DNA of 64,000 nt from Takakia lepidozioides (GCA_030704615.1 CM060734.1:7750001-7814000), one strand, 5' to 3'. Positions 39,200-63,395 are shown, counted from the stretch's first letter. Translations and numbers: made by a program. The notes: generated by a model from the letters alone, not told the origin.

Positions 39200-41650
39200 C
39201 CCCAAATGACCTCTACCCAACATGCACACTCACTCTGCATCACCACCTGGAACGTGGGTTCCTTAGCCACAAGCATTCAAAGCCTCATCCACCTTCTATC
39301 CGAATCTGTTTCCCCACATGTCATCCTCCTACAAGAAACTAAACTCAACACTAACACCCTCAATAGTTCATACTTGAACAAACTCCTTCCAACATATTAT
39401 ATGCTATACGACAACCCCCTCACTGCTACACAATGTCTTTCTCGCCGATCCGCCCCGTATCACCCCCCCCAGGGGGTGTCGCTCTTGGCATCCTCCGCAC
39501 ACACCACTCCTCTAGCACCACCACCAAAACCAATATACCTATCCCCTTACGCTCACACCTCCAAATTATCCAAATAAATTTGTCTGCCATCCCCCCCATC
39601 ACGCTTATCCACCTATACATGCCCTCACACCCCGATGACCTACCGCTGATCCCCGACATCCTACAAACCATTTCTGACACCGTCACCCAGCCAACAATAC
39701 AACAGCACAATATTATATTAGTTGGCGACTTTAACAGAGATATAGCACTCCTTGGTCACACTCATAATGGCGTACACATATCCCCCTCCCCCACGGACCG
39801 TACATGGGCAACATTCATCCAGCAACACCAATTCCAATACATCTTTGCTGACTACCACTACTCCAGACAAGGCGGACTCAATTACTCTTCCCTTAGCCTC
39901 CTAGACGGATTCTACCTTAATTCTCACAACAGCGTACCCTAACACCTACGCAGCCATATTCACATCAACAGCATCTGTAACTCCGACCACTACCCAGTAT
40001 CACTCACCTTCCCACCGTCCCTCATACCCTTCCGACCCATCCCGTCTATTCACACCCCACCCCCCCCAATCCCGGATATTGTCCCCACTACCACAACGTA
40101 ACATCGATATCTTCCAACGCCTCTTCCATATAGCCGCCACAACCCACATACTACAATTATCTAAAATCCTCTCCCATGACAACATAACACTACTCCCCGA
40201 AGACACCTGGATACAAGCTGAGTGCACACTTACCAATATTATGAACATAATAACCACATGCGTTCTCACCTCATGTTGCGCCCCCCCCAGACGTGCCACA
40301 AACCCCCCGCTCTATACAAAATGGCGGCTATCTCACACGCACACAAAAATGTATATGGACTTCTCACCTCAACACCTACCACACAATCCGAGGGGCTCTT
40401 GCTACCATCCCCCAATCACTCACAACCCATCCTATTAACAACTGGAGATCCGACCCCCGCATTACCTGCCTTGCCACCCTCGCACCCTACCACACACTCC
40501 TACCCCCACCTATAGAACCCTCCGCCAAACCTAAATGGTGCGCAGCCCTATCCAAAATAGGTAGAGAAGCAAAGAAAGTTGCATACAACATTACCAAACA
40601 AAAAGCCACAGACAACCACAAAAAATTCGGTTCTTCCTTCAACCAACTACTGCATGATCACCCCAAAAAAGCACACAAAGTCATCTTCAACCCCTCACTT
40701 AACCCACCCATAGACTGCTTTTGCCATCGCCATGGCCATCTAATAACCGACCCCATGGCCATTAATCAAGAAATATGGGCCCAAGCCTCCTCATCCTACA
40801 CGCCCACCGTCTCAAACTGCCTACACCCAAACTTACACGCCCATACATGCATGTGTAAAATAAAACACTACCCATGGCATGACATAGATGGCTTCACACT
40901 AGAAAAACGAGGCTCTCCGATCGACCGCATTCTCGACTCCTTCACTATTGATATCTACGAAACATGTCTCAAAGCTCTATCCAAATCCAAAGCCCCAGGC
41001 CCTGACTTTATACCCAACGCCATCCTCCAATCACTCGACCCACACCTGCACCACCTCATCTTCACCTTCTTCCACCTATGCTATCAACTAAAACATATCC
41101 CGCACTCTTGGAAACACAGTCGCACCATACTGCTATTCAAAAAAGGTGACCCCACCGATCTCAATAATTATAGGCCCATTGCACTAGCCAATACCATATA
41201 CAAACTATTTACAAGTACACTAACTACAATGCTCTCTGCCTATGGGGAGCAACACCGCATCCTCAGTGACCCACAAGAAGGCTTCCGAGCCACAAAAAGC
41301 ACAACCAGGCAGATACAATACGTCATCTCCACATTAGAAGATGTCAAACTCACCAAACAAAACATCTACCTTCTCTACATAGACTTTAAAAATGCCTTTG
41401 GTTCCCTTGATCATGGCCGTCTCCTTGCCGTCGTGACTGACCTCGGCTACCCCACACACGCAATCTAGCTTATCGGCAATATCTACACAAATAGCACCAC
41501 GGAATATGCAGGAGCCTACTACGGCTCCACCCCCCCTATTCCAATTCTCCGCGGTACCATCCAAGGTGACACCCTCAGCCCCTACTTATTTATAATCTTC
41601 TTAGAACCCCTCCTTCGATGGCTTGCATGTGGGAATCTAGGATACCACTA
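39200..41650 (+). mobile_element. LINE family B APE endonuclease plus RT, frameshifted and 3'-truncated (Dualen/RandI-like or L1-like)
   Basis: TWNVGSL, LLQETKL, LVGDFNR, LLDGFY and SDHYPV (APE); KAPGPD, NYRPIALANTIYKLF, QEGFR, IDFKNAFGS and RGTIQGDTLSPYLFIIFLEPLLRWL (RT). Confidence 0.88.
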
Positions 41651-41743: not shown

Positions 41744-41869
41744 TTAACCGGTCACGGACCTGTCACGCTGCAGAAGAGTATGGACTTCATCAGGTGATAG
41801 CGTGTCTTGGTGAATGTACTGGTCTCTTTTGGGGTCACAACACATCCTGCGCACAAAAATGTAGTACAA
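41744..41869 (-). pseudogene. C-terminal relic of a second SWIM-domain gene copy
   Basis: LYYIFVRRMCCDPKRDQYIHQDTLSPDEVHTLLQRD aligns with LYYIFLRMMYCDPKRDQIIHQATLGPGEVQTLLQRD of the 55669-56244 ORF. Confidence 0.85.
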
Positions 41870-45910: not shown

Positions 45911-48900
45911 CTATACAACAGAATTTTGATATAATACGAATCGCGGATTATATGCAATGGGGTGATCATGGCCTTCTGTATCAGGTTGACACAAAGCACA
46001 TCCAACTGCAATTGCTGAAGCGTCAACATACACATGAAAAGGTCTGTCCCAGACTAGTGCTGCCAAAACTGGTACTGAGATCAGTTTTTGCTTTAGGTTC
46101 TCAAAAGCTTGTTGGCATCCTGTATCCCATGAGAAAACTTGATTTTTTCTGAGTAAGTGGGTTAGGGGAATGGCTTCTGAGGCGTAGTTTCCCATGAATC
46201 TTTTGTACCACCCTACGTGGCCTAAGAAACTCCTGACTTTTGACACTAAAAGTTGAGCAATAGCCTTGACCTTGGATGGGTCAGTAGCAATTCCATGTTT
46301 GGACACAATATGGCCTAACAAGAGTCCATGGGTAACAGTAAAGACACATTTCATTGGGATCAAGGAGATACCAGTCTCCCTGCATTTGAGAAAGCACTCT
46401 CGAAGTGCGGTGATGTGACTGTGGATTTCTCCATGGCAACAAAAATCATCTAAGAAGATAGCCATGTTCCTTCGAACAATATCGGAAAATGCATAGGTCA
46501 TCACCCTTTGAAAGGTCAGGGGTGCGGTGCATAGACCGAATGGCATGCGTGTGTAAGCAAAAGTGCCGCATGGAGAAGTGAAAGTCGTCTTCATTACATC
46601 TTTTGGATCAATAAACACTTGGTTGTATCCTGAAAACCCATCCATGAATATATTTCTTTCCCTGCCACTTCCTCTACTAAGGAGTCAAGAAAGGGCAACG
46701 GAAAATGATCTTTATGAGTGACATCATTGAGAGGACGAAAATCCACACAGACCCGCAAGCCTCCAGTTTTCTTTCTTACAATCACCCTTGGTGAAACCCA
46801 TTCTGAAGTTTCAACAGGGAAGATAAAACCAACAGCTAATAATTTCTCAATTTCCGTTTTGATTAGCAAAGCCAAATTTGGATTGACCCTTCTTTCCCGC
46901 TGTCTTCACGGTCGTGCCTGCGGAACTAAAGGAATTGCGTGCATTGCAATGTATGGAGGAATCCCTTTCAGTTCAGTATAGGACCATGCAAAAACATCAT
47001 GGAATTCTTTGAATAAAACCTGGTACTCTAGGACCTGCTCTGGAGTCAACTAAGCTCCTACCTTTACCATTCTGGGAGGTTCGTCTCCTACTGACATGTC
47101 TATTGTCTGAGTCTTAGGTTCAGAAATGAATTATGACTCTGTGATTTGATCTGCCAATGCAGGAGTATTCGTTCGCTGTAGGTAGGGAATGGACGGAGCA
47201 CTATGTCTCAACACGTCCTGTACTAATTCGTCTTCGTCAATGAGTCTGAGATCAAGGGTCTCATGGTTTTTATCCTGAGGGAGAGTGCTATTATCCATGC
47301 TAACTTGGTCAGAGTTGATTGTGAACAACTCTACCAAAATCCCTCTCTCTGAAAATGGTAGTTCCATACTTGTCATGGTCTTCCCTTCCACATGAATCAT
47401 ATTCACGATTTCTTCCCTACCATATAAGCACTAAAGACAATCGGAATCGGAATTACACTCATACAACCCTGGGCCTAATGACTTGACCACATCCCCCAAC
47501 AAGTCCCCTCATCAATCATCTTGGGTCTTTTAGGTACCCAAGGCGTAGTTATCACTCTGTTGATTTGCACTTCAGGTTCTTCTTCAGTATGAAGATCTTC
47601 CTCACTCAAATCTTCCAACTCCTCATCTGATCCTATTGCACCGAATTCATCTTCATCAGTTAAGACCTTGGGTACAGATGAGAGGAATGACACTGTCACA
47701 CTATTGGGTTTGACACCATAAGTGATGGTTCCCTTAGCCCAGTCTGTACATGCTTGAGCTTGAACCAACCATGGTCTGCCCAATAGTAATGCATACGAGT
47801 ATTCATCTGACGGACAATGACTTGGAAGTCCATTGTGTATGCAGAACCCCCGGATTGCATTTGAAGATTGGAAATTTGACCCACTGGCCTAATTCTGCGC
47901 TGATCTGCCAATCGGATAATCAATGGGGATTTACCAGTCATGTGTAAGCCTAGTTTCTCCATTGTGGAGAGTGGCATGATGTTCACCGAGCTTCCACCAT
48001 CTACCAAGCAATGTTGAATAAAACAGTCTACAATCTCCACCTCAATCTCTATTGGTCTAGGGTCTATTCTTGCATTGACATGATGCGATACTGGGAAATT
48101 CTCTCGTCTTTTCCTGACCAATGAAGCCTTCATGGTTTGTCTGACTGTAGGAGCAAGAGCAACAAGCTGAGCTACTGAAATGTTGGCCTGCACTTGGCAC
48201 AGGTCATGCATCAAGTTATAGGGCTCAAGCTCATTGGTAAATCTCATGGTGGTAGACTTCATTTTCAGAATTTGAGGACGTTTCGTTGTAGTGTTAGCTA
48301 TTTTGACTGCTGACACTTTCGGTCGCATCACTAGTGACGGCAACGGAGTGGACACCTTACCCGGAGAGTCACTCCCTTCAAATACCACAGATTTTCCCAT
48401 ACTGGCTTCATTCTCATTGTGAAGAGTAGTAGCAATCTTTGTCACATCATCCTTCACAACTTGAAAATCCATTGGTTCTTTGTCCGAAGATGAGGTAGGT
48501 GTAACCTTTGGAATTACCTCTTCCGGCGCTCATACCAACATCTCTTGTTGTTGGCGAGTCATCACCACACATGTGTTTTCCTCACGTTCCTCCTCTTTTG
48601 GCATGCTTGACAGTTCGGCGTGTATCCAATTCACATTAGGTTGCGATGGTAACATCTGCGTGACTGGACCAGAGGAAGTCCCTGCTTGTGGAAGAGGTTG
48701 TGTGGATGTCGATGCTTGGTTGGACCCTTGATTCCTCTCATCCTGAGATCGTCGCCATGGAAGTTGACTTTGCGTTTCCTGCATCACAGAATTTGTAAAT
48801 GACACCGTAGGTTGATGACTGAATTGAGATTGCTTTGGGGGATTGGAATTTGGATCTCTTTGTAATATTTGCGGAGCAAAGTACATCCCATGTTGGGGTG

Positions 48901-50150
48901 GTAAATTTGCCGGAGGCACCTGATTATATTGATCAGGAAATGGCGCTCTTTGACCTTGTAGATTTTGATCAACTTGCCATTGGGTTGTAGGTTTTGGCCT
49001 CTCAATATTTCTCGTTCGACAACGCTCCAAAGGATGTCCTACTAAACCACAATGAAGACATGTGACATCATTCCAACAATCTTCTGTTCTATGACTGGAC
49101 CGACCACACTTTCCACATGGCGGATAACGGTTTCGTGGCCTATACCCCTGTCCTGGTGGAGGATTCTGGGATGGAGGAGGTCCCCTTTCATGGATTGGGT
49201 TGGGACAATGTTGGGGATCATGGCCTGACCCTCGACAATTATAACACCATAACTTGGACGCATAAGGACCTATCTCAGCTAATGGAACCTGAGTATCCCT
49301 GTGATGGACATAACTAGAAACCTGTTGACCAATGGCACTAACTCTATCCCCCATGGACTCAACAGCTCTCAACACAGATGTTAGTTGTTCCTCAAAATGT
49401 CCCATCCGATCATTGCTAGAGGATCCCGTATATGATTCAGCAGGAACTGACTGAAAGTGCCTTGCTGGGTTTGAGGGGGTGGTGGTAGCCACCAAAGGCA
49501 TTGCAGATGTCACCGTGGCAGCAGGAACCATCCCTCCAGTCATTGTCGGTCTGTAATAGGGCGGGGGAGGTGTCCCAGAAACTGCAAGCGTTGGATTAAC
49601 CGCAATGTATGAAGGGAGTGCCATCTCCGGCATCTTCGCACGTTGAACCTGACGATGCATGTTGTCATGTTCTTTCCCTGAGTTGATCGCATCTGCTAAT
49701 GTAACAGGTCTCTGTTGCAACACAAACAAGTGAATATCCTCTAGTAACCCACTCAGAAAGCAATCTTTCAGAACCCCATCATCCAAGGGTGTTAGAGGAT
49801 TCTGTAATCGCATTAGCTCTTTGACATGCATCTCAAAATCAACAACTTCCTCGTTTGGTCCCTGTCTAATTCTGGCAAGGGCCATAAGAACACTTGTTGG
49901 AAGGAATTTAGTCCTCCACAGTCTTTGGCACATTATTACCAGATCATGCGCATTTGGTTGCCAGTGGCAACTCGGACTAAGGTTCTTCCAGACAATCGAC
50001 CCATTGAGGATCATCATTTTGCAAGGTACTGGTCTGAGGCAGGCACCATGTTGAAGGAATTAATTGTCTTCTAGGTTGTTCATGGGTACATCTACACCAA
50101 GACTAGGAAAGTATCTAGTATTGTCATGGGCTGTGGATTCTACCATGCTG
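45911..50150 (-). mobile_element. Ty3/gypsy LTR retrotransposon internal region (gag, protease, RT, start of RNase H), degenerate
   Basis: Gag has three CCHC knuckles (CYNCRGSGHDPQHC, CGKCGRSSHRTEDC, CLHCGLVGHPLERC). Protease motif LVDGGSS; RT motifs RVCVDFRPLN, DGFSGYNQ, MPFGL and FLDDF; RNase H motif VYVDASAIAVG. Confidence 0.93.
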
Positions 50151-50901: not shown

Positions 50902-51674
50902 TGTTAGAGGGCTGTTTGGGACTTAGACACTTTTATGGGCTCTGTGGGGTACCCTTAATTTTTGCGCAGACTTACGGATGGTAGACTTAGACCAACAGAG
51001 GCCTTAGGGGTGACAGACACAGGCTTTAGGGGTGGTAGACAGGCTTACACACTCGGTCACAGTCTTACACAGTCTGTCACAGTCAATCACAGCCTATCAC
51101 AGTTAGTCACAGTCTATCACAGCTCGGCACAGCTTCGCACAGCCAGTCACAGTCTGACATAGCACGACACAGCCCGACACAACTTTACACAGTCAGTTAC
51201 AGTCCAACACAGTCAGTCATAGCTCGGCACAGTCACAGCCCGACACAGCTTGGCACAGCTCGTCACAACGTACATAGGGAACGGTTATCATTAGCAGGGA
51301 ACGACTGTGTGGGAACGACATCTGCAGAGGGAACGTGTTACTTCAGGGGTGACAGTTAGTTAGTTAGGCGGTTAGAACAGCTTGCAGGTAGATTAGGCAG
51401 AGCAGCAACATGAAGGGGATCACTTTTCGGGGAGCACTTCTTGATCGTGAGCAAAGGAGATCAGGCGGAGAACAAGAACGGAACCAAGGATGGAGAGATG
51501 ATTTGATCGATGCTTGAATCATACAAGCTGTAGAATCGTACTGTAGAACAGATTAGAGACACTATGGCTACGGTCTGATACTGAACAGAGATTAATATGA
51601 TACACATACCTTACCCACACTGTGTGACGGAGAGGGAGTGGGAGTCCTGCTTAGACCTGGCGTCCTAAGCAACA
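50902..51674 (+). mobile_element. Long terminal repeat (3' LTR) preceded by a PPT
   Basis: PPT GAGAGGGGGAGGGG at 50885-50898, then TGTT...AACA termini. An internal 10-bp periodic CACAG repeat runs about 51055-51270. Confidence 0.7.
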
Positions 51675-51889: not shown

Positions 51890-52845
51890 CCTTGTGCCGT
51901 AATAGAGATGAACAGTCCCGACATGACAGTTTGAAATCCTCGGGATGGATGAATTACGACGTCGCAAAAGGGATGAACAGGCACAAAAGCGGACAAGAAA
52001 AGGATGTCATACCCATATTACGGCGTCGTAATAGGGACGAACGGGATGGCAATCAAATGAGAATGGCATGATCTGGAGGAATTTAAGGCGTCGTAATAGG
52101 GATGAACAGTCCCAATATGAACAGGCACGAAAGCGGACAAGAAAGGGATATCACACCGCTATGACGACGTCGTAATAGGGGTGAACGAGATGACAATCAA
52201 TTGAGAATGACATCATCTAGATGAATTCATAGATTTAACACACATTGAACGTAGCTAATTTCGAACACCCCATCCCGGCGACGGATGAATTTCGGCGCCG
52301 AAATAGGGATGAACTTACTCGTGAGTAAAAGCGAATTTCCACCCATGGATGAATTTCGGCGCTGAAATAGGGATGAACGAACCTGTGAGCAAAAATGAAT
52401 TTAAACCCATGGATGAATTTCGATGCCGAAATAGGGATGAAGATATGCGTGAGTAAAAAATTATTTCGACCCACGAATGATTTTTGGCGCCGAAATAAGG
52501 ATGAACATACCCTATATCAAGAAGGAATTTAAACCACGGATGAATTACGGCGCCGAAATAGGGATGAACGTACCCGTGAGCAGATGGATAAATCACGATG
52601 TCGCAAAAGGGTTGAACAAGCAAGAATGCGGACGACAAGGGGACGGAACCATTGGATTGCGACGTCGTAATAGGGACGATCGGGCCCATCACGTCGAAGA
52701 AAAACCCATACACACACACACAACCTCCTTCATGGATGAATTTTGGCGCCGAAATAGGCCAATCCGGAGGAACCACCACCCGGAAAAAATAAAAATAAAA
52801 TAAAATAAAAGGTCACGGATGAATTTCGGCGCCGAAATAGTGATG
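51890..52845. repeat. Tandem array with palindromic core GGATGA-ATTTCGGCGCCGAAAT-AGGGATGAA, unit about 60-65 bp
   Basis: More than ten copies of the core or its variant ATTACGRCGTCGTAAT. Confidence 0.9.
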
Positions 52846-52869
52846 AGACGATCCAAGGTTGATGTCCCC

Positions 52870-53780
52870 ATCAACGCTTCTTTTGTTTTTGAGGTCGCCC
52901 TTCGAAAGCTGCAACCGCCTCGGATGCGTTTCCCATTTCTGACCCAAGTTGTCTCCACTTGATGATAGCCCTTCCATTTCACGAGATACTCCGTTTCTCG
53001 ATTCTTGAACCTCCTCGATTTAAGCACTGCCTCCACCTCGTACTCGGGTTCATTTTCATGATCCAACAGTACAGGTGGCGGACGCAACACTTGATGCCGA
53101 TTCGGACGCGCTTCATCTTTGAAGTATGGCTTCAAAAGGGAAACGTGGAATACTGGATGCACCTTGCTGTTTGTTGGCAGCTCCAATTCATACACTTCTT
53201 TATTCATAACCTTCCGGATGTGAAAGGGCCCCGCATATGGAGGTACGAACTTCGGACTCACTTCCGGAGGTAATAAAAAATTCTTGATGTTCAACCAGAC
53301 CTCTGTGCCTGCCTCAAATTTAACTTTCCTCTGCTTCCAATTCGCCTGCCGTTCATACCGTTTCCTAGCTTTGGCAATGTTGTACTTTGCAAGCTCCAAC
53401 AAACGCTCGCGTTCTTCCAATACCGCTGCTACTGCCGGCTCCTCACTGTCTTGGGCGGCCCAACTTGTCGGCACCAGAGGTGCTTTTCCATAGAACAATA
53501 CGAAAGGGGAAACTCCAGTTGCGGAGTGTTCTGTGTTATTATAACAGAACTCTGCCGCATCCAAGTGCTCTACCCAGTCCGACTGGTCTGCCGACACATA
53601 ATTCTGCAAGATCTGCTTCACCACGGAGTTCACTCTTTCCGTTTGGCCGTCCGTTGTAGGTCGGAAGGTCGTGCTCATCTTGAGCCTTGTCCCTATCTTC
53701 TTCCAAAGTGCCCTCCAAAATTTACTTGTAAACTTTGGATCGCGGTCCGAGACAATATCCTTCGGTTGTCCATTACAGCA
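52870..53780 (-). mobile_element. Chromovirus (Ty3/gypsy) integrase C-terminal half with chromodomain; 5'-truncated
   Basis: PKDIVSDRDPKFTSKFW, TDGQTERVN, YAGPF, HPVFHVSLLKPY and EYEVEAVLKSRR..EYLVKWKGY..TW. Confidence 0.93.
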
Positions 53781-53969
53781 AAGGGGACGAGTGCAGCTAC
53801 GACGTGAGCCTAGCCGCGTGAGCCCAGGAGCTCGGCTCACGCTTTGCCCTCTAAGCGTGAGCCCAGGGGTTTAGTGGAGGAAGAAGCAGGCCCCATACCC
53901 GAGTCCTCTGTTTAGAGAGGGTCCTATTGTCGTAGAAGCAGTTATAGCGCTTAAAAAAAGAGGTATAGA

Positions 53970-55330
53970 AAGAATGGAATGGTCATTGTGAAACTTACTG
54001 AGGTTTTCTTATTGAAGAAGAGGTGAAAAAAAAAAGCTGGGTGAGTCATCATGAATCTTACTTAGGGATTCTTGCATGAACAAGAGGCAAGAAAAGTTTG
54101 GATGCTCATTGTCAAGCTATCTGTCGTTTCCAGTTTTTCATCCATGGTGGATGGATGATGGATGGATGATGGATGGATGAAATATTGAAGGAGAGGTTTA
54201 AAATAATGAGGATGGGCAAGAACATGCCCCAAAATATGAGCCCTCATTGTGAAACAGACAATGGTTTTTGTTAATATAGATGAGGTGAAAATTAAACAGA
54301 TGGTCATCTTCAAGCTTATTTAGGCTTTGTTTGTGAAGATGTGTAACAAAATGAGCGGTTCATTGTGGAACTTGTTTAGGTTTGTGTTATTGAAGATGAG
54401 GTGAAAAAAAAACACATGGTCATTGTGATTGCTTATTTAGGGTGTCTTTGTGAAGAAGAGGTAAAAAAAACATTGAGCTATCATTGTGAAACTTGTTTAG
54501 GATTCTGTTATTGAAGAAGAGGTGAAAAAAAAATCAGATGGTCATCTTGAATGCTTATATAGGGTTTGTTTGTGAAGAAGAGGTGAAAAAAAAGTTAAGC
54601 TCTATCATTGTCAAACTTGTTCTGGTTTCTGTTATTGAAGAAGAGGTGAAAAAAGAAATCAGATGGTCATTATGAATGTTTATTTAGGGTTTGTTTGTGA
54701 AGAAGAGGTGAAAAAATTGAGCTCTTATTCTCAAACTTGTTAAGGTTTCTGTTATTGAAGAAGAGGTGAAAAAAATATTAGATGGTCATCATGAATGCTT
54801 ATTTAGGGTTTGTTTGTGAAGAAGAGGTGAAAAAAAAAGTTGAGCTCTATCATTGTCAAACTTCTTCAGGTTTCTGTTAGTGAATAAGAGGTGAAAAAAA
54901 AACCAGATGGTCATCATGAATGCTTATTTAGGGAATAAATTAGGGATTGTTTGTGAAGAAGAGGTGAAAAAAAAACTTGAGCTCTACCATTGTCAAACCT
55001 CTGCAGGTTTCTGTTATTGAAGAAGAGGTGAAAAAAATTGAGCTCTATCATTGTCAATCTTGTTCAAGTTTCTGTTAATGAAAAAGAGGTGAATAAAAAT
55101 CAGATGTCATCATGAATAAATTAGGGTTTGTTTGTGAAGAAGAGGTGAAAAAAAAACTTGAGCTCTATCATTGTCAAACTTCTTCAGGTTTCTGTTATTG
55201 AAGAAGAGGTGAAAAAAAAATCATATGGTCATCATGAATGCTTATTTAGGGTTTGTTTGCATAGAGGACGTGGAAAACAAATGAGCTGTCATTGTGAAAC
55301 TTGTTCAGGTGCCTGTTATTCAAAGAAGAA
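53970..55330. repeat. Satellite-like tandem repeat: about 125-bp dimer of two related subunits of about 62 bp
   Basis: Recurrent TGAAGAAGAGGTGAAAAAAA followed alternately by TCAGATGGTCATCATGAATGCTTATTTAGGG and TTGAGCTCTATCATTGTCAAACTTGTT. Confidence 0.9.
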
Positions 55331-55668
55331 GTCGTGAAGCTCATTTACGCAATGCTTCTGTAGAGGCCCTGAAAAAATAAAATGAGCTTTCATACTAACA
55401 CTTGTCCATGTTTGGCAGGCCCTCGAACAAAAAATGGTTTTTTTTTTTTTTTTTTTTCTTGGCCCGGGGCAATATTGGGGGTGGGGGCAGAAGTGGTGTA
55501 CGTTGACGCACTCAATTTTATAGGCTCGTTAACCAAACCCGATGAAAAAATAAACTATCTTTCATGACGAGACATCGCCTGCTTGTCTAGATTTAAGAAC
55601 TGTGTATACATGTTCTACAAACAAGGCAGCCCTTTCCGACATTGCAAAAAATCGCAACATATGCAACA

Positions 55669-56203
55669 CTACTCGATATTGCCAATGTCTCGTTGCAAAA
55701 GTGTCTGTACCTCACCAGGACCTAGTGTCGCCTGGTGAATGATTTGGTCTCTTTTGGGATCACAATACATCATGCGCAAAAAGATGTAGTAAAGATGCTT
55801 GCAGGGAACCCATTTCCTTCTCTTTCCTAGAGCTTCCTCACGCATGCACACGAAGTCGGGACAGGTACACCCCGGAAAATTTCCCACCGTCACCTGATAG
55901 GCCCTGTCGTGCAAAACAGACCCAGATGTGACCAAAGTATAAACCCGTCCATACCCAGGTGAAGGTACTTCCATAGTTCCTGTTACCCGAGCCTGAAGTA
56001 GTCTGGCCGATTCCACCTTCGCATCGTGATCAGGCCCCGAAGCCACCCGATGCACTGTTTTGCCATTCCTTCTCGTGGGATGCGAAGTATCGTCTGGAGG
56101 AGGCACCATAGCAGCAAGGCCACCAAGAGTCGATGCCACAGATCGGTGCAGACGAAAGCCGACGTCCTCCAACTTGTCAATCTCCAGTTCGTCAATGATC
56201 ATC
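55669..56203 (-). CDS. SWIM zinc-finger protein, terminal exon (N-terminus missing)
   Basis: YQVTVGNFPGCTCPDF...WVPCKHLYYIF is the CxC..CxH SWIM signature. A probable acceptor TTTCAG lies just before MIIDE. Confidence 0.85.
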
Positions 56204-56456
56204 CTGAAATCATGATCATGAAAAAATTGAGTATGTTGACGCACTCAGTTCTCGGGGGGGGGGGGGGGGGGGGGGGGGTTCCCCCAAAACCCGCCGGGTA
56301 CCCGGGGTGAAAATCCGGACCCGCACCTCTCGTCGATGATCATCCTGAAATCATGATCATGAAGAAATTGAGTGCGTTGACGCACTCAGTTCTCCCGGGG
56401 GGGGGGGGGGGGGGGGGGAGGGAACCAAAATTAATTAATTAATTAATTAAAAAAAA

Positions 56457-57788
56457 TTGGGTATCATACAATCTGTCACGATGAGTTGTCGCCGGGAGCT
56501 GGCAAGCTACTTGAAAGCCTCGGGGATGCGGATTATCAAGACCTGGAACTGTGTCAACAACCTATATCTGACGAAGGGGGATTGCCCAGGGCAGAAGGTG
56601 GGTTTCAAATACTTTGTTTTTATGCCTTATCTGTTGAAGTTCCACTGTACTGACTGTTATGAAGTCATGCTGTTCGCACTGCCTGAATTGAGTGCTTCAA
56701 CGCACTCAGTTATGGCGGTGCATGAGCAATGACTCTGAACCAGTTCCATCCAGAATGGGTCTGCACTCCCACCCAGATGTGCTATGAAACATTCCTCACT
56801 AATTATTGTCCTCTTCATCGCAGACCCATCTATTTGAGGCCGTGTGTCTCGTGAGGGTACATCCACTGTTGACTCCCACCACAGTGGTGGAGTTCAAGCT
56901 TCATGGGAGAGGATGTTTCATAAACGAGAGGTTCGATCCTGTCATCGACAACATGCACTACAACTATGTCGACTCCAACGTATGTTTGCGAAAGCCAAAT
57001 GGAACTCCTTGGAGAGGGGCCCGTGAAAAAAGCCCGACTTTTATCCAAACGATCATTGAGAGTTGTTCTCGGCCAGGGGCCCGCATCATAGATCTCACTC
57101 TTGGCACAGGTTTCTCTTCTTGCCTTTGTCATCGATTTATTTTCTTCTGCACCTTCTTTACTCAATATTCTAAAACACTAATTCCTTCAATCTGTCTCTT
57201 GCAGGCGTTTTTTACCATGCTTGCAAGGCAGGTGGCAGGCACTTGTTTGGTATGGAAGGAGATGCAGATATTTTCACTGGCCTCCTTGCCGAGTTGCAAG
57301 GGGGCGCGTCTACCTCCAATGTCAAGGATGTCACTGCGCAAATTGATATCCTCAACGGAGACGACAAGGACCTGGACAATGACTTTTCATGTGAGTAAGT
57401 TCATTTTCTGTCTATTTGATCCCTGTGTATATGCTCTGTCGCGTCCCCTTCTGTTGTCTGATTGTTACCCAAATGGTACATTTCTGATTGCAGGAATGTG
57501 AACGCACTCCCGTGGCCCCTGTCTTCCATATACTTGAGGGACTTGTGCTGGAGCCCACCTCCTAATTATGTCCTTCCCGATTACGCGGAAGGCATTGCTC
57601 GTGTGCAAGCAGCTGTGCTTTCTCCCCTACCCTTGCGTTGGAGTTCCAGGAAGACGCTCAGGCACCTCCGCGCAAAGGTCTTCATAGATGATAGTGCAGC
57701 AGTTTCAGGTTGTAGCAGTACTTCTAGCAGTTCAGCAGATTCAGGTGGTAGCAGTAGCAGTGTTGACACCACCTACGGATGTACTTGA
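56457..57788 (+). CDS. Spliced, N-terminally truncated protein with N6-adenine/N4-cytosine DNA methyltransferase-like C-terminal motifs
   Basis: Exons ..56597, 56824-57109, 57205-57394 and 57494-57788 are all GT-AG with consistent phase. The product reads WRGAREKSPTFIQTIIESCSRPGARIIDLTLGT|GVFYHACKAGGRHLFGMEGD, matching K..L...I...S.PG..V.D...G.G....A....GR...G.E. Confidence 0.75.
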
Positions 57789-59536
57789 GGGCATTCATTT
57801 ATGGAACATGAGGGGACACACTCTCCGTTTTCTGTTGCACCACCATTTCTCTTCCCACCATCCGTTGTAATGAGCACGGACTACAATGAAATTCACATCC
57901 CTGAATTGAAACATTCTCTCCCCCGCGTCCTGCGAATTTGAAAGTGTTTTCCTTCTAAACATTGCTCTCCAATTCAACCATGTGCATTCAATAAATTTTT
58001 TTCAACAAAGATGAATATGTGCATAGTCCAGTAGACAGTCATTCGACATATGCCATCACACCAATATATTGGTTGGATGGATGGAGGATGAATGTTTTTG
58101 GATGGATGAAGCCAGATTGGATATGACCTGTGGATGAATGTTGCATGCATGGATGGTCCTATGGATGATGTCAGTGCGTAGTATCATGCACAGGGGCGGG
58201 ATGGCGAGGTTCACTGTCGGGGTTGAGGTAGGTCCCTAAGGCTGACAAGGGTTAGGGTTTCTGTTTGGGGTTGCAGGGTTAATATGGATGAAGACGTGTT
58301 TCTGCGGTAATGGATCCTCTTCCACATAAATAGACGCCGCATCTTTCCCAAAACCATGCCACGTGTCCTGGGCTCACGCCAGGCTCCTGGGCTCACAGGC
58401 TCCTGGGCTCACGTGGCTAGGCTCACACTCTAGCATCCCCCCAAAGGGGACCGGACTACATGGATTGTCTTCACCTACCACACCCAATCTCATGAGCTTG
58501 TTGAGAGGCCAATCAAGGTTCCAACTTCTTGGTGACAACACTGCAACATGGCAGCAAATGGCATAGATTGCATGCATACTTGAAGCTTACCTTGGCTTGT
58601 GAGGCCATGCGTAGTTGTCAGTTCAATATATGAATAAAAGTGTTTATTGAGCAAAAGTTCCAGTTTGTGTGCAATGATGATTTCTGTTGAATGTGCACTT
58701 TTGCCTGAGAGGGTCCAGCACTCTTCAATCTTGTACCAAAACTGAAATCTTGCACGCTCGCCCCCACGCCTCTCGTCAAACGCCGTAGTCAATCATTTGC
58801 GCAGGGCACCTGCACCGGTCTGCAGCCTTCTGACTGCATACCGTTGGCAGTTATTGCCAAAGAGCAGGGCCACATTTCGTAGACCAGGTTCATGAAAACT
58901 CTGACAGTGGATTTATGGGAGTGTGGGCTCGCCGAATTCGTGAATAGGCTTCCTCGGTCGTCCAGATGGGCCCTGCATTGCTTTGTTTGGCTACATTGCC
59001 GCTTCTCCCAGGGCGCTTGCCCGGACGCCGAGTCATCTGTGCGCATCTGCCATGGCTGCAAACTCGAGCGCTATAGTGTACTGCCCTCCTCACAAGCACA
59101 GAGCGACATTTTGGTGCAGAGGGGGAGTATGTCGGGTTGCCAAAAAATATCTCTGCGTCCAATACCACCTGAAACCGGGGTCAGTGTTCCTGGAGGAGGA
59201 AATGATGGATTCAAATGGAGTTGTAGTCGAAAATATTGTTGTGCTCCAGGACGATTTCGGTGACGGCAGGGAATGGTGAGTTCCACCATTGGACAACGTC
59301 ATATACAGGGCTGTTTGAGACTTCATTTTCCCGCCAAATGCGCCTTCTTGTTGTCAAGTTATTTTACCACTAGTGTGAAACTAGCTAGGAAATAGCTAGC
59401 TTTTACATATTGACATTTGGGATTGGCCCAAGTGTCAATCCAGGGGTCAAGGCAGATTTAGGCCCTGGAGTGGTTATCTTCACGGCAAGCGCGGGAGGCT
59501 CATCTTTCTCGAGTTGAGCCTCACCGCGCCTAGCTA

Positions 59537-61212: not shown

Positions 61213-62900
61213 TGGGGCTGTGACAGGCTGTGGCAAGCTGTGACGGGCTGTGACAGGCTGTGGCAAGCTGTGACAGGCTGTGCCCTGTGCCCTGTGGGGC
61301 TGTGACGGGCTGTGTCAGGCTGTGACAGGCTGTGCCCAGTGGCCTGCTGTGACGGGCTGTGCGGGGCTGTGACAGGCTGTGCCCTGAGGCCTGTGGGGCT
61401 GTGACGGGCTGTGACAGGCTGTGCCCATGGCCTTTGGGGCTGTGATGGGCTGTGAGGGGCTGTGACAGGCCGTGCCTGAGGCCTTTGAGGCTGTGATGGG
61501 CTGTGATGGGCTGTGATAGGCTGTGCCCTATGCCCTGTGGGGCTGTGATGGGCTGTGTCAGGCTGTGACAGGCTGTGCCCAGTGGCCTTTGGGGCTGTGA
61601 CGGGCTGTGCGGGGCTGTGACAGGCTGTGCCCTGAGGCCTGTGGGGCTGTGACGGGCTGTGACAGGCTGTGCCCATGGCCTTTGGGGTTGTGATGGGCTG
61701 TGAGGGGCTGTGACAGGCCGTGCCTGAGGCCTTTGCGGCTGTGACGGGCTGTGACGGGCTGTGGCAAGCTGTGACAGGCTGTGATGGGCTGTGACAGGCT
61801 GTGCCCTGTGCCCTGTGGGGCTGTGACGGGCTGTGTCAGGCTGTGCCCAGTGGCCTTTTGGGGCTGTGACGGGCTGTGCGGGGCTGTGACAGGCTGTGCC
61901 CTGAGGCCTGTGGGGCTGTGAGGGGCTGTGACAGGCCGTGCCTGAGGCCTTTGAGGCTGTGATGGGCTGTGATGGGCTGTGACGGGCTGTGTCAGGCTGT
62001 GACAGGCTGTGCCCAGTGGCCTTTGGGGCTGTGACGGGCTGTGCGGGGTTGTGACAGGCTGTGCCCTGAGGCCTGTGGGGCTGTGACGGGCTGTGACAGG
62101 CTGTGCCCATGGCCTTTGGGGCTGTGATGGGCTGTGAGGGGCTGTGACAGTGCCTGAGGCCTTTGCGGCTGTGAGGGGCTGTGAGGGGCTGTGACAGGCC
62201 GTGCCCATGGCCTTTGGGGCTGTGACGGGCTGTGAGGGGCTATGACAGGCCGTGCCCGAGGCCTTTGGGGCTGTGACGGGCTGAGAGGGGCTGTGACAGG
62301 TCGTGCCTGAGGCCTTTGGGGCTGTGACGGGCTGTGAGGGGCTGTGACAGGCCGTGCCTGAGGCCTTTGAGGCTGTGGTGGGCTGTGAGGGGCTGTGACA
62401 GGCCGTGCTTGAGGCCTTTGAGGCTGTGGCGGGCTGTGAGGGGCTGTGACAGGCCGTGCGTGAGGCCTTTGGGGCTGTGATGGGCTGTGAGGGGCTGTGA
62501 CAGGCCGTGCGTGAGGCCTTTGGGGCTGTGACGGGCTGTGAGGGGCTGTGACAGGCCGTGCCTGAGGCCTTTGAGGCTGTGACGGGCTGTGAGGGGCTGT
62601 GACAGGCCGTGCCCATGGCCTTTGGGGCTGTGACGGGCTGTGAGGGGCTGTGACAGGCCGTGCCTGAGGCCTTTGAGGCTGTGACGGGCTGTGAGGGGCT
62701 GTGACAGGCCGTGCCCATGGCCTTTGGGGCTGTGACGGGCTGTGAGGGGCTGTGACAGGCCGCGCCTGAGGCCTTTGGGGCTGTGACGGGCTATGAGGGG
62801 CTGTGACAGGCTGTGCCTGAGGCCTTTGAGGCTGTGACAAGCTGTGAGGGGCTGTGACAGGCTGTGCCCAGTGGCCTGTGGGACTGTGACGGCTGTGACC
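61213..62900. repeat. Minisatellite built from a 10-bp GGCTGTGA(C/G/T)N unit with higher-order units of about 54 bp
   Basis: Directly visible, e.g. GGCCTTTGGGGCTGTGACGGGCTGTGAGGGGCTGTGACAGGCCGTGCCTGA repeated. Confidence 0.97.
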
Positions 62901-63395
62901 AGTGAGCTGTGTGGGCCTGTGCTGGTCTGTGGTGGCCCGTGTTGACCTGTGGATGGCCTGTGCTGACTCGTGGAGGCACTGGTGGACTAAGGACTGGCAT
63001 GTGGTCTGGAAGGCCGAATTTTGAAGCTCGTGGAGGGCGGTTTGAGGAGTATCTTCATGATATTCCCATGGTCATGCAAGTTCAGGTGTAGGCTATGTTA
63101 GGAACTTAGTATTCCAAACCATAAGCCGCAACAGGTTCTCTACCCGGTTACCTTGTGGAGAGGGGGTTAGGGACATGTTCATGACCGGTTGAGTGTCAAC
63201 ACGGAGGTGCCACTAGTTGCTGGGGACAGTGCCGGTTCGAGCACTAGCGATACTAGTGGGTACACGAGACGAGGTGTGCGGTTTAGGCCACCTTCACCTC
63301 CTGTGTCTTCCACAGAAGGTTCTGATTCGGATTGTGAATCAGGAGGGCTCATACCGGCGGTGCAAGTTGTTTCTTTTCCATTATTGTGGGACACA

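Follow-up and report, generated by a model that had tools for sequence, protein, structure and literature searches.

A probable Mutator-like deletion derivative with a SWIM-domain transposase remnant and an intact four-exon orphan gene in Takakia lepidozioides

The non-autonomous Mutator-like elements (MULEs) include deletion derivatives of the MuDR type as well as the Pack-MULEs; a Pack-MULE contains no transposase sequence, and its interior consists of captured fragments of host genes for which a parent can be identified. Chromatin modifiers that are borne by transposons are also known, viz. VANC in VANDAL, SET in the MuDR elements of Phytophthora, and TET/JBP in KDZ elements. The target site duplications (TSDs) of MULEs are 8-11 bp in length, the SWIM domain is common in their transposases, and in the MULE lineages Phantom and Rehavkus minisatellites are found after the transposase open reading frame (ORF) (PMC6446971). 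The Zisupton transposase also contains a SWIM domain together with a Cys cluster, and the TSDs are 8 bp in Zisupton and Dileera and 7 bp in Kyakuja (PMC12730594, PMC11343200), while KDZ elements carry passenger genes for DNA modification, viz. TET/JBP (PMC12730594). The present work describes an element of 4,653 bp, located at positions 53789-58441 of a 64,000-nucleotide stretch of Takakia lepidozioides DNA (GCA_030704615.1 CM060734.1:7750001-7814000), and this entire stretch is referred to below as the window. This element is probably a non-autonomous cut-and-paste DNA transposon, which has been derived by internal deletion from a family whose transposase, about 1,100 aa in length, carries a SWIM domain at its C-terminus. 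The original prediction for this region, made from the sequence alone, had proposed a novel architecture, in which inverted repeats enclose a satellite and divergent SWIM and methyltransferase (MTase) genes with no visible transposase. However, the SWIM ORF proves to be what is left of a transposase gene, and when the "SWIM gene without a transposase" is recognized as what remains of a transposase, the apparent novelty is removed and the element appears as a fairly ordinary deletion derivative of Mutator-like kind.

With the non-autonomous MULEs, the element shares terminal inverted repeats (TIRs) with reiterated subterminal words, a flanking direct repeat whose length of 10 bp is within the 8-11 bp range (PMC6446971), the lack of the catalytic part of the transposase, the presence of foreign, gene-like and intron-bearing DNA in its interior, and a parent transposase with a C-terminal SWIM domain. 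However, its TIRs are short and imperfect (about 43 bp), and the catalytic domain of its family is not recognized by the Pfam MULE model. It differs from a Pack-MULE in keeping a transposase tail of about 170 codons, and also because its captured segment is a complete and intact spliced ORF without an identified parent in the searches made, which covered loci from other genomes. The similarity to Zisupton/KDZ elements lies in the Cys-rich N-terminal region and the C-terminal SWIM domain of the transposase in the relatives of this element, whereas the 10-bp repeat, the lack of any match to the Pfam KDZ and CxC models, and the absence from the element of TET/JBP or of a confirmed DNA-modifying gene are all points of difference. 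The element, and also some of its relatives, further resemble the Phantom (aphids) and Rehavkus MULEs in that a tandem array separates the terminus from the transposase 3' end (PMC6446971, Table 1). This likeness is one of array position. Between the arrays of the relatives and the element, the short word ATCCATCC is all that is common.

Termini and internal organization of the element

The features of the element and of the direct repeats flanking it are as follows (positions are those of the window, with the strand in parentheses):

53779-53788 (+): left 10-bp direct repeat CAAAGGGGAC, a putative target site duplication, abutting the TIR end
53789-53900 (+): left terminus, with the TIR at 53789-53831 (core 53804-53831) and a subterminal zone with GTGAGCCYAG at 53804, 53818 and 53857
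53955-55332 (no strand): internal AT-rich satellite, delimited by Tandem Repeats Finder (TRF) for the well-formed array, by self-BLAST from 53955, and by GC content
55669-56202 (-): SWIM ORF, a 5'-truncated C-terminal transposase remnant of 177 codons from the first ATG (56202) plus the stop, based on HMMER relatives, alignment A2 and tblastn
56189-56418 (no strand): putative deletion-junction zone, which contains a tandemly duplicated 89-bp segment, runs of G and palindromes
56481-57788 (+): orphan four-exon gene of 295 codons (exons 56481-56597, 56824-57109, 57205-57394 and 57494-57788)
58330-58441 (-): right terminus, with the TIR at 58399-58441 (core 58399-58426) and subterminal GTGAGCCYAG at 58368, 58387, 58403 and 58417 (minus strand)
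58442-58451 (+): right 10-bp direct repeat CAAAGGGGAC, abutting the other TIR end

The 28-nt cores of the two inverted repeats are complementary at 27 of their 28 positions (96%). When the two ends are aligned, the similarity runs, although imperfectly, for 15 bp further outward from the cores, which places the true ends of the element at 53789 and 58441 and gives an imperfect TIR of about 43 bp, with 34 of 43 positions matching in the end-to-end alignment. In the inward direction, the similarity continues, with indels, up to about 110 bp. The sequence of the left end is GAGTGCAGCTACGAC and that of the right end, in reverse complement, is GGGGGATGCTAGAGT. The word GTGAGCCCAGG is present in exact form twice at the left end on the plus strand and three times at the right end on the minus strand, a count reached by none of 100 shuffles, and there are no further exact copies of it in the 64 kb; the looser word GTGAGCCYAG, with three copies at the left end and four at the right, is found only once elsewhere in the window. 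The 10-mer CAAAGGGGAC, which directly abuts both TIR ends in identical form, is present in the window only in these two flanking copies, and it is regarded here as a putative TSD.

Due to the mirrored termini and the word family common to both ends, and the same 10-mer lying outside both of them, the region 53789-58441 is a single TIR-bounded element rather than two neighbouring insertions. Hardly any credence can be given to the alternative that the inverted repeats come from two independent insertions located next to each other with no single element between them, for which no evidence was found, as both ends show the same 43-bp terminus and mirrored word family, and the 10-mer which flanks them is found nowhere else in 64 kb.

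The satellite, which has a GC content of 33%, is located between the left TIR and the 3' end of the transposase remnant. Its well-formed part, as identified by TRF, extends from 54231 to 55318 with periods of 61/125/244, viz. a submonomer of 61 bp and a higher-order unit of 125/244 bp, and degenerate copies of it are detected by self-BLAST from 53955 onward. It is likely a subterminal array of the kind known from some MULE lineages, and five distinct related loci also have tandem arrays, at a distance of 0.8-2 kb downstream from their SWIM end. Within the degenerate satellite copies to the left of the well-formed array, there is a cluster containing the word GGATGGATGA three times (54149-54180), and a word cluster of the same type is found inward of the right subterminal zone (58075-58109). 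The inverted repeats of 28 bp, the reiterated motifs at the ends, the internal satellite of 1.35 kb and the SWIM gene on the minus strand had all been described in the original prediction, and each of them is borne out by these results, with the inverted repeats now extended to a TIR of about 43 bp and the reading as a single element upheld.

A separate observation concerns the 8-mer ATCCATCC (reverse complement GGATGGAT), which occurs five times in the element versus six times in the other 59 kb of the window. Within the element it is always on the transposase-sense strand and is limited to the two subterminal zones noted above (54149-54180 and 58075-58109). In two related metagenome loci (about 6190-6705 in L002/L003/L006, corresponding to 11732-12247 in L006, and about 12046-12417 in L008/L011), this word, likewise oriented, is found throughout tandem arrays of 107/111 bp, which follow downstream of the SWIM end at a distance of 1.2-1.6 kb. 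The 8-mer may represent a subterminal word conserved in the family, or simply low complexity.

The SWIM ORF and its transposase family

The open frame which bears the SWIM domain spans 55669-56244 on the minus strand and shows the CxC...CxH pattern, with the zinc ligands C112 and C114 (C112-T-C114) and C134 and H136 (C134-K-H136) all intact. In an alignment of 28 relatives (A2), C112 and C114 are invariant and H136 is nearly so, while the Cys at position 134 is missing in some of them. The score of the ORF with the Pfam SWIM model (PF04434) is 10.5 bits, which is below the cutoff of 19.6, whereas that of its best relative, P0001, is 21.2 bits and thus above this cutoff. In an exhaustive HMMER search, 311 relatives of the ORF were identified, 77 of them with E values below 1e-10, and the similarity to P0001 amounts to 60% identity between residues 6-173 of the query and residues 279-444 of P0001. 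A word search with the SWIM ORF gave no match, within the limits set by its length and the word index, and PDB sequence searches with this ORF and with the N-terminal profile A3 gave chance matches only.

In its relatives, the SWIM domain forms the C-terminus of a set of proteins of 440-480 aa, which start with MPSCNLAE..., and also of a 672-aa fern protein; one of the relatives is an annotated hypothetical protein from the fern Adiantum nelumboides. A query with the fern protein led to N-terminal partner ORFs of about 645 aa (P0172, P0175 and P0176), and both transposase ORFs (P0175 and P0148) are present together on a contig of 4.6 kb. Further, a scan of JGI metagenome contigs with alignment A4 provided 69 related loci (686 kb in total), which represent distant relatives from other organisms with no more than 56% identity in the SWIM part. 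The N-terminal ORF is located directly upstream of the SWIM ORF, and on the same strand, in 33 of these 69 loci, and where both ORFs are intact the gap between them is 34-70 bp, i.e. the size of a short intron. The full protein of this family is about 1,100 aa in length, and the SWIM ORF corresponds to its last 170 residues or so. Clusters of GTGAGCC are absent from the relatives.

The N-terminal ORF of the relatives contains, in alignment A5, a Cys-rich region followed by the blocks MFDHVKR, GFMAD and C.FHW, and the C-terminal ORF opens with SCNLAE. These blocks presumably represent the D..D..CxxH..E signature of the Mutator-type and related DDE transposases. In the metagenome loci, a few copies are intact, whereas many are degenerate and interrupted by numerous stops, as expected for the copies of a transposon, and the family is interpreted accordingly. 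The upstream D..D..CxxH..E core, as read by eye, and the many decayed copies, in the metagenome loci and the fern, thus indicate that the family protein is a transposase. As a further observation, intact and stop-free ORFs for the catalytic part are found on contigs from peat and moss metagenomes (L033:2199-3731, L025:24-1256, L023:2-1060 and L005:1-1029), and these four are 64-65% identical to each other, which suggests from their sequences that the family has been recently active in some organism of the peat or moss samples.

The SWIM ORF in the Takakia element aligns to the last 170 or so residues of the family protein, it starts inside a conserved block (WPVK.GT.LT..E..LE.AGF.L in alignment A2), and the rest of the protein is missing. 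Due to this, the ORF is interpreted as the 3' remnant of a transposase gene. No other part of the transposase was detected in the window by tblastn with the relatives, except for a second tail fragment of 38 codons at 41756-41869, and by this measure neither the element nor the rest of the window contains the catalytic part. As its catalytic part has been lost, the element is a non-autonomous deletion derivative, in agreement with the part of the original prediction that placed it in a larger family. It is thus defective, and would move only with the help of a full-length relative. Since the standard MULE and KDZ models miss this family, automated annotation will leave such elements nameless in the genomes of bryophytes and ferns; the 311 detectable relatives of the family include intact copies from a fern and from the metagenomes of peat and moss.

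The deletion breakpoint is placed at about 56190-56200, where one end of the tandem duplication in the junction zone is located. This zone extends over about 280 bp, and the two copies of the 89-bp duplication (56189-56277 and 56330-56418), which are 93% identical, include the start of the SWIM ORF and each end in a G run of about 25. An 18-bp palindrome GAGTGCGTTGACGCACTC, consisting of an 8-bp stem and a 2-nt loop, is present in four copies, all of them inside the element, viz. after the SWIM stop (55496-55513), before the SWIM start within the duplication (56229-56246 and 56370-56387), and in the first intron of the orphan gene (56690-56707). This palindrome may have a regulatory role, or it may be a scar of repair.

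The orphan four-exon gene

The exons of the gene on the plus strand amount to 888 nt, which are in frame from ATG to stop, and they are separated by three GT-AG introns of 226, 95 and 99 nt. The donor sites are GTGGGT, GTTTCT and GTAAGT, the acceptors are in all cases CAG behind a pyrimidine tract, and the GC content of the exons is 50-54% versus 35-45% for the introns. Searches with this gene were carried out exon by exon, and for the word search and the scans of prokaryotic genomes and viral contigs, only exon 2 was used. The exons showed no match in Pfam, NCBIfam, PHROGs or PADLOC, even at an E value of 10, nor did any MTase model match them; the PDB sequence searches with exons 2 and 3 gave chance matches only, and the word search, prokaryotic genomes and viral contigs provided nothing for exon 2. 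None of the four exons matches the 69 related loci (best E value 0.06), and no parent gene was found for this gene either in these exon searches or in those loci. Based on these results, the MTase-like gene of the original prediction stands as a coherent four-exon gene model, but not in its identity as an MTase, as no exon matches any methyltransferase model or protein, and the proposal that SWIM and MTase genes travel together finds no support among the 69 loci, which are distant relatives.

In the translations of individual exons, GDC is present in exon 1, KSPTFIQTIIESCSRPGARIIDLTLGT is at the end of exon 2 and VFYHACKAGGRHLFGMEGD opens exon 3. At the position of motif IV, (D/S/N)PP(Y/F/W), and at the expected distance after GDC, exon 2 reads ...LVRVHPLLTP..., i.e. 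HPLL. The S-adenosylmethionine (AdoMet) motif I (FxGxG) and the GR..(I/F)G.E block can be matched by eye, with no statistical support, to ...IIDLTLGT at the end of exon 2 and VFYHACKAGGRHLFGMEGD, which are in phase across intron 2. The order of these short motifs, viz. GDC, the tetrapeptide at the DPPY position, and IIDLTLGT with VFYHACKAGGRHLFGMEGD, recalls, by eye, that of the beta-class N6/N4 MTases. The likeness to the latter (N6_N4_Mtase, PF01555) thus consists of a by-eye order of GDC, a tetrapeptide at the (D/S)PPY position, and a ...D.T.GTG/GR..FG.E block. However, the orphan exons show no match to any model, the tetrapeptide is HPLL, the motifs are separated by a far shorter stretch than usual, and the gene contains three spliceosomal introns. 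An MTase ancestry of the gene is unproven, as nothing identifies it as an MTase and the catalytic tetrapeptide is not conserved.

The 1.3-kb segment which contains the orphan gene is most likely acquired DNA, taken up either in the manner of Pack-MULEs or as filler DNA from abortive gap repair. An orphan gene that is intact, contains introns and is located in a defective transposon could have been obtained by gene capture or could be an accessory gene borne by the transposon, and a methyltransferase-derived passenger would be of interest, if true.

The present structure could have originated in the following manner. The GTGAGCCYAG repeats may serve as binding sites for the transposase of a full-length copy elsewhere in the genome, by which the element would be mobilised in trans; this transposase would excise the element at 53789 and 58441, with reinsertion by means of a staggered cut of 10 bp. 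The loss of about 2.8 kb from the 5' part of the transposase gene would have given rise to the present copy, in which the place of the lost part is presumably taken by the junction with its 89-bp duplication, G runs and palindromes, and then by the 1.3-kb segment with the spliced orphan gene in opposite orientation. Duplication, homopolymer and palindrome scars at the junction would resemble those which interrupted gap repair leaves behind. The gene-bearing segment may have been gained during this repair, or it may represent a resident second gene of the family, which is considered below.

Superfamily placement, competing explanations and insertion site

The element is placed in the Mutator (MULE) superfamily because of its 10-bp repeat, the by-eye reading of the transposase motifs and a weak lead from a language-model atlas, in which the N-terminal part of the fern protein is nearest to MULE clusters (scores 0.84-0.88, a lead only). 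In the one copy examined, the length of the flanking repeat falls within the MULE range of 8-11 bp and is not 8 (Zisupton) or 7 (Kyakuja), and the TIRs and the C-terminal SWIM domain of the family transposase are also MULE features. The element is called Mutator-like on this basis, and its membership is not claimed as proven. Among other types of elements, Helitron was rejected, as the flanks are not A|T and the terminal hairpin signature is missing, while hAT, CACTA, PIF and piggyBac were rejected because their TSD lengths do not fit.

Several observations weigh against the interpretation of this element as a Mutator-like deletion derivative with an acquired gene. The Pfam MULE model (PF10551) shows no match to the 11 N-terminal ORFs of the family, even at E<=1, and the AlphaFold predictions for the catalytic part (A3 and A5), with predicted local distance difference test (pLDDT) values of 40 and 53 and below 50 in the core, leave a ribonuclease H (RNase H) fold unsupported. 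In none of the relatives could a TIR or TSD be defined by inverted-repeat scans, paralogous-copy boundaries, or inverted matches between upstream and downstream sequences, and the placement rests on a single copy of the element in the window. Further, an intact four-exon reading frame is unexpected for a randomly captured fragment, and a clean split of one target by the insertion cannot be shown, as the integrase of the left flank (described below) is not continued on the right.

In view of these points, other explanations need to be considered. The original prediction had drawn a link to KDZ elements, and the order in the relatives of a Cys-rich region, the catalytic core and SWIM is indeed the canonical Zisupton order (PMC11343200), while the Pfam MULE model remains without a match in the family. 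However, it is quite unlikely that the family belongs to the KDZ/Zisupton group rather than to Mutator, as the flanking repeat is 10 bp versus 8 bp in Zisupton and Dileera and 7 bp in Kyakuja, the Pfam KDZ and CxC models match none of the 11 N-terminal ORFs, and the neighbours in the atlas are MULE clusters. It is also unlikely, but deserves consideration, that the family normally contains the orphan gene as its second gene, viz. a DNA-modifying or anti-silencing passenger transcribed divergently from the transposase, in which case nothing but the 5' part of the transposase gene would be missing in this copy. The motif order (GDC; KSPTFIQTIIESCSRPGARIIDLTLGT with VFYHACKAGGRHLFGMEGD) recalls that of the beta-class N6/N4 MTases, the gene is intact with its four exons, canonical splice sites and 888 nt in frame, and it stands head to head with the transposase remnant across the 280-bp zone with its repeated palindromes, a layout which is exactly what a deletion within a divergently transcribed transposase gene gives; passengers that modify chromatin are known from MuDR, Harbinger and KDZ elements (PMC12730594). 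However, the exons have no match in the 69 related transposon loci, the searches of protein-family, PDB, word, prokaryotic and viral sets were all blank, HPLL is in place of DPPY/SPPY, and the 4.6-kb contig with both transposase ORFs (P0175 and P0148) leaves little room for a second gene. An account in which the parent family is an unrecognised DDE transposon lineage of mosses and ferns, with this copy carrying a spliced passenger derived from a beta-class DNA methyltransferase without the catalytic motif, e.g. a DNA-binding or anti-silencing factor, is assigned a distinctly low probability.

The remaining alternative concerns the insertion site. The feature on the left side of the element and the second transposase fragment in the window are as follows:

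52689-53786 (-): left flank, stop-free 3' part of a Ty3/gypsy pol (365 codons), with Pfam rve profile positions 64-102, SH3_Tf2-1 (1.2e-13) and Chromo (1.2e-8)
41756-41869 (-): second isolated fragment of the same transposase C-terminus (38 codons), with 71% aa identity to P0001 and 78% to the SWIM ORF

The pol sequence in the left flank comprises the end of the integrase core, SH3_Tf2-1 and the chromodomain, and it is 5'-truncated at the insertion, with the similarity to integrase stopping within a few codons of the left 10-mer. In the right flank, up to the end of the window, a three-frame reading and Pfam searches of the ORFs revealed no integrase, RNase H, reverse transcriptase (RT) or other retroelement ORF in any frame. 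Thus, of the earlier claim that the left end cuts a chromovirus integrase, the part concerning a gypsy integrase C-terminus and chromodomain in the left flank is confirmed, but the other half of this gene is not found in the right flank. The integrase paralogues in the window and the integrases in the fetched loci provided nothing usable for comparison except one distant example, from locus L061. When both 10-mers are omitted, the reading frame of the right flank (...HVVR) continues that of the left flank (CNGQPKDIVSDRD), whereas the frame is broken if one 10-mer is kept, as for a TSD. This could be explained if the 10-mers are the TSDs of an earlier site that were carried in with the element (e.g. 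by copying into a double-strand break), with the gypsy integrase broken a second time some 25 bp further right. However, this explanation is considered unlikely, as the agreement involves only four residues, with stops located 6 and 11 codons upstream, the L061 integrase (...IICRYGVPK) fits the reading with one 10-mer (PLCCNGQPK) about equally well, and the mechanism would be unusual. A true TSD in a gypsy fragment that was already truncated is moderately favoured over the arrival of an insert with old TSDs, because the mechanism in the former case is an ordinary one.

A number of other repeats and remnants are present in the window. The second fragment of the transposase C-terminus (41756-41869) abuts a truncated RT of a non-long terminal repeat (non-LTR) element of the long interspersed nuclear element (LINE) type (40800-41640), and no TIR words are found nearby. 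To the left of the gypsy fragment, there is another LTR retroelement on the minus strand (45911-50017), in which gag, with its zinc knuckles, spans 48530-50017 and the protease-like ORF and RT are located at 47696-48472 and 45911-46645, respectively, and its integrase is not similar to the 52689-53786 fragment. Satellites with a period of 10 bp, based on CACAG[CT]C, are located on both sides of the region in opposite orientation, at 50995-51232 (+) and 61215-62965; the right one, 1.7 kb in length, shows periods of 10/51 bp and contains long repeat-derived ORFs, and these satellites may be LTR-internal arrays of oppositely oriented retroelements. Lastly, tandem repeats of 144 and 64/128 bp with the palindrome ATTTCGGCGCCGAAAT are found at 51973-52582, downstream of the gypsy chromodomain, and they probably belong to the 3' region or LTR of the gypsy element.

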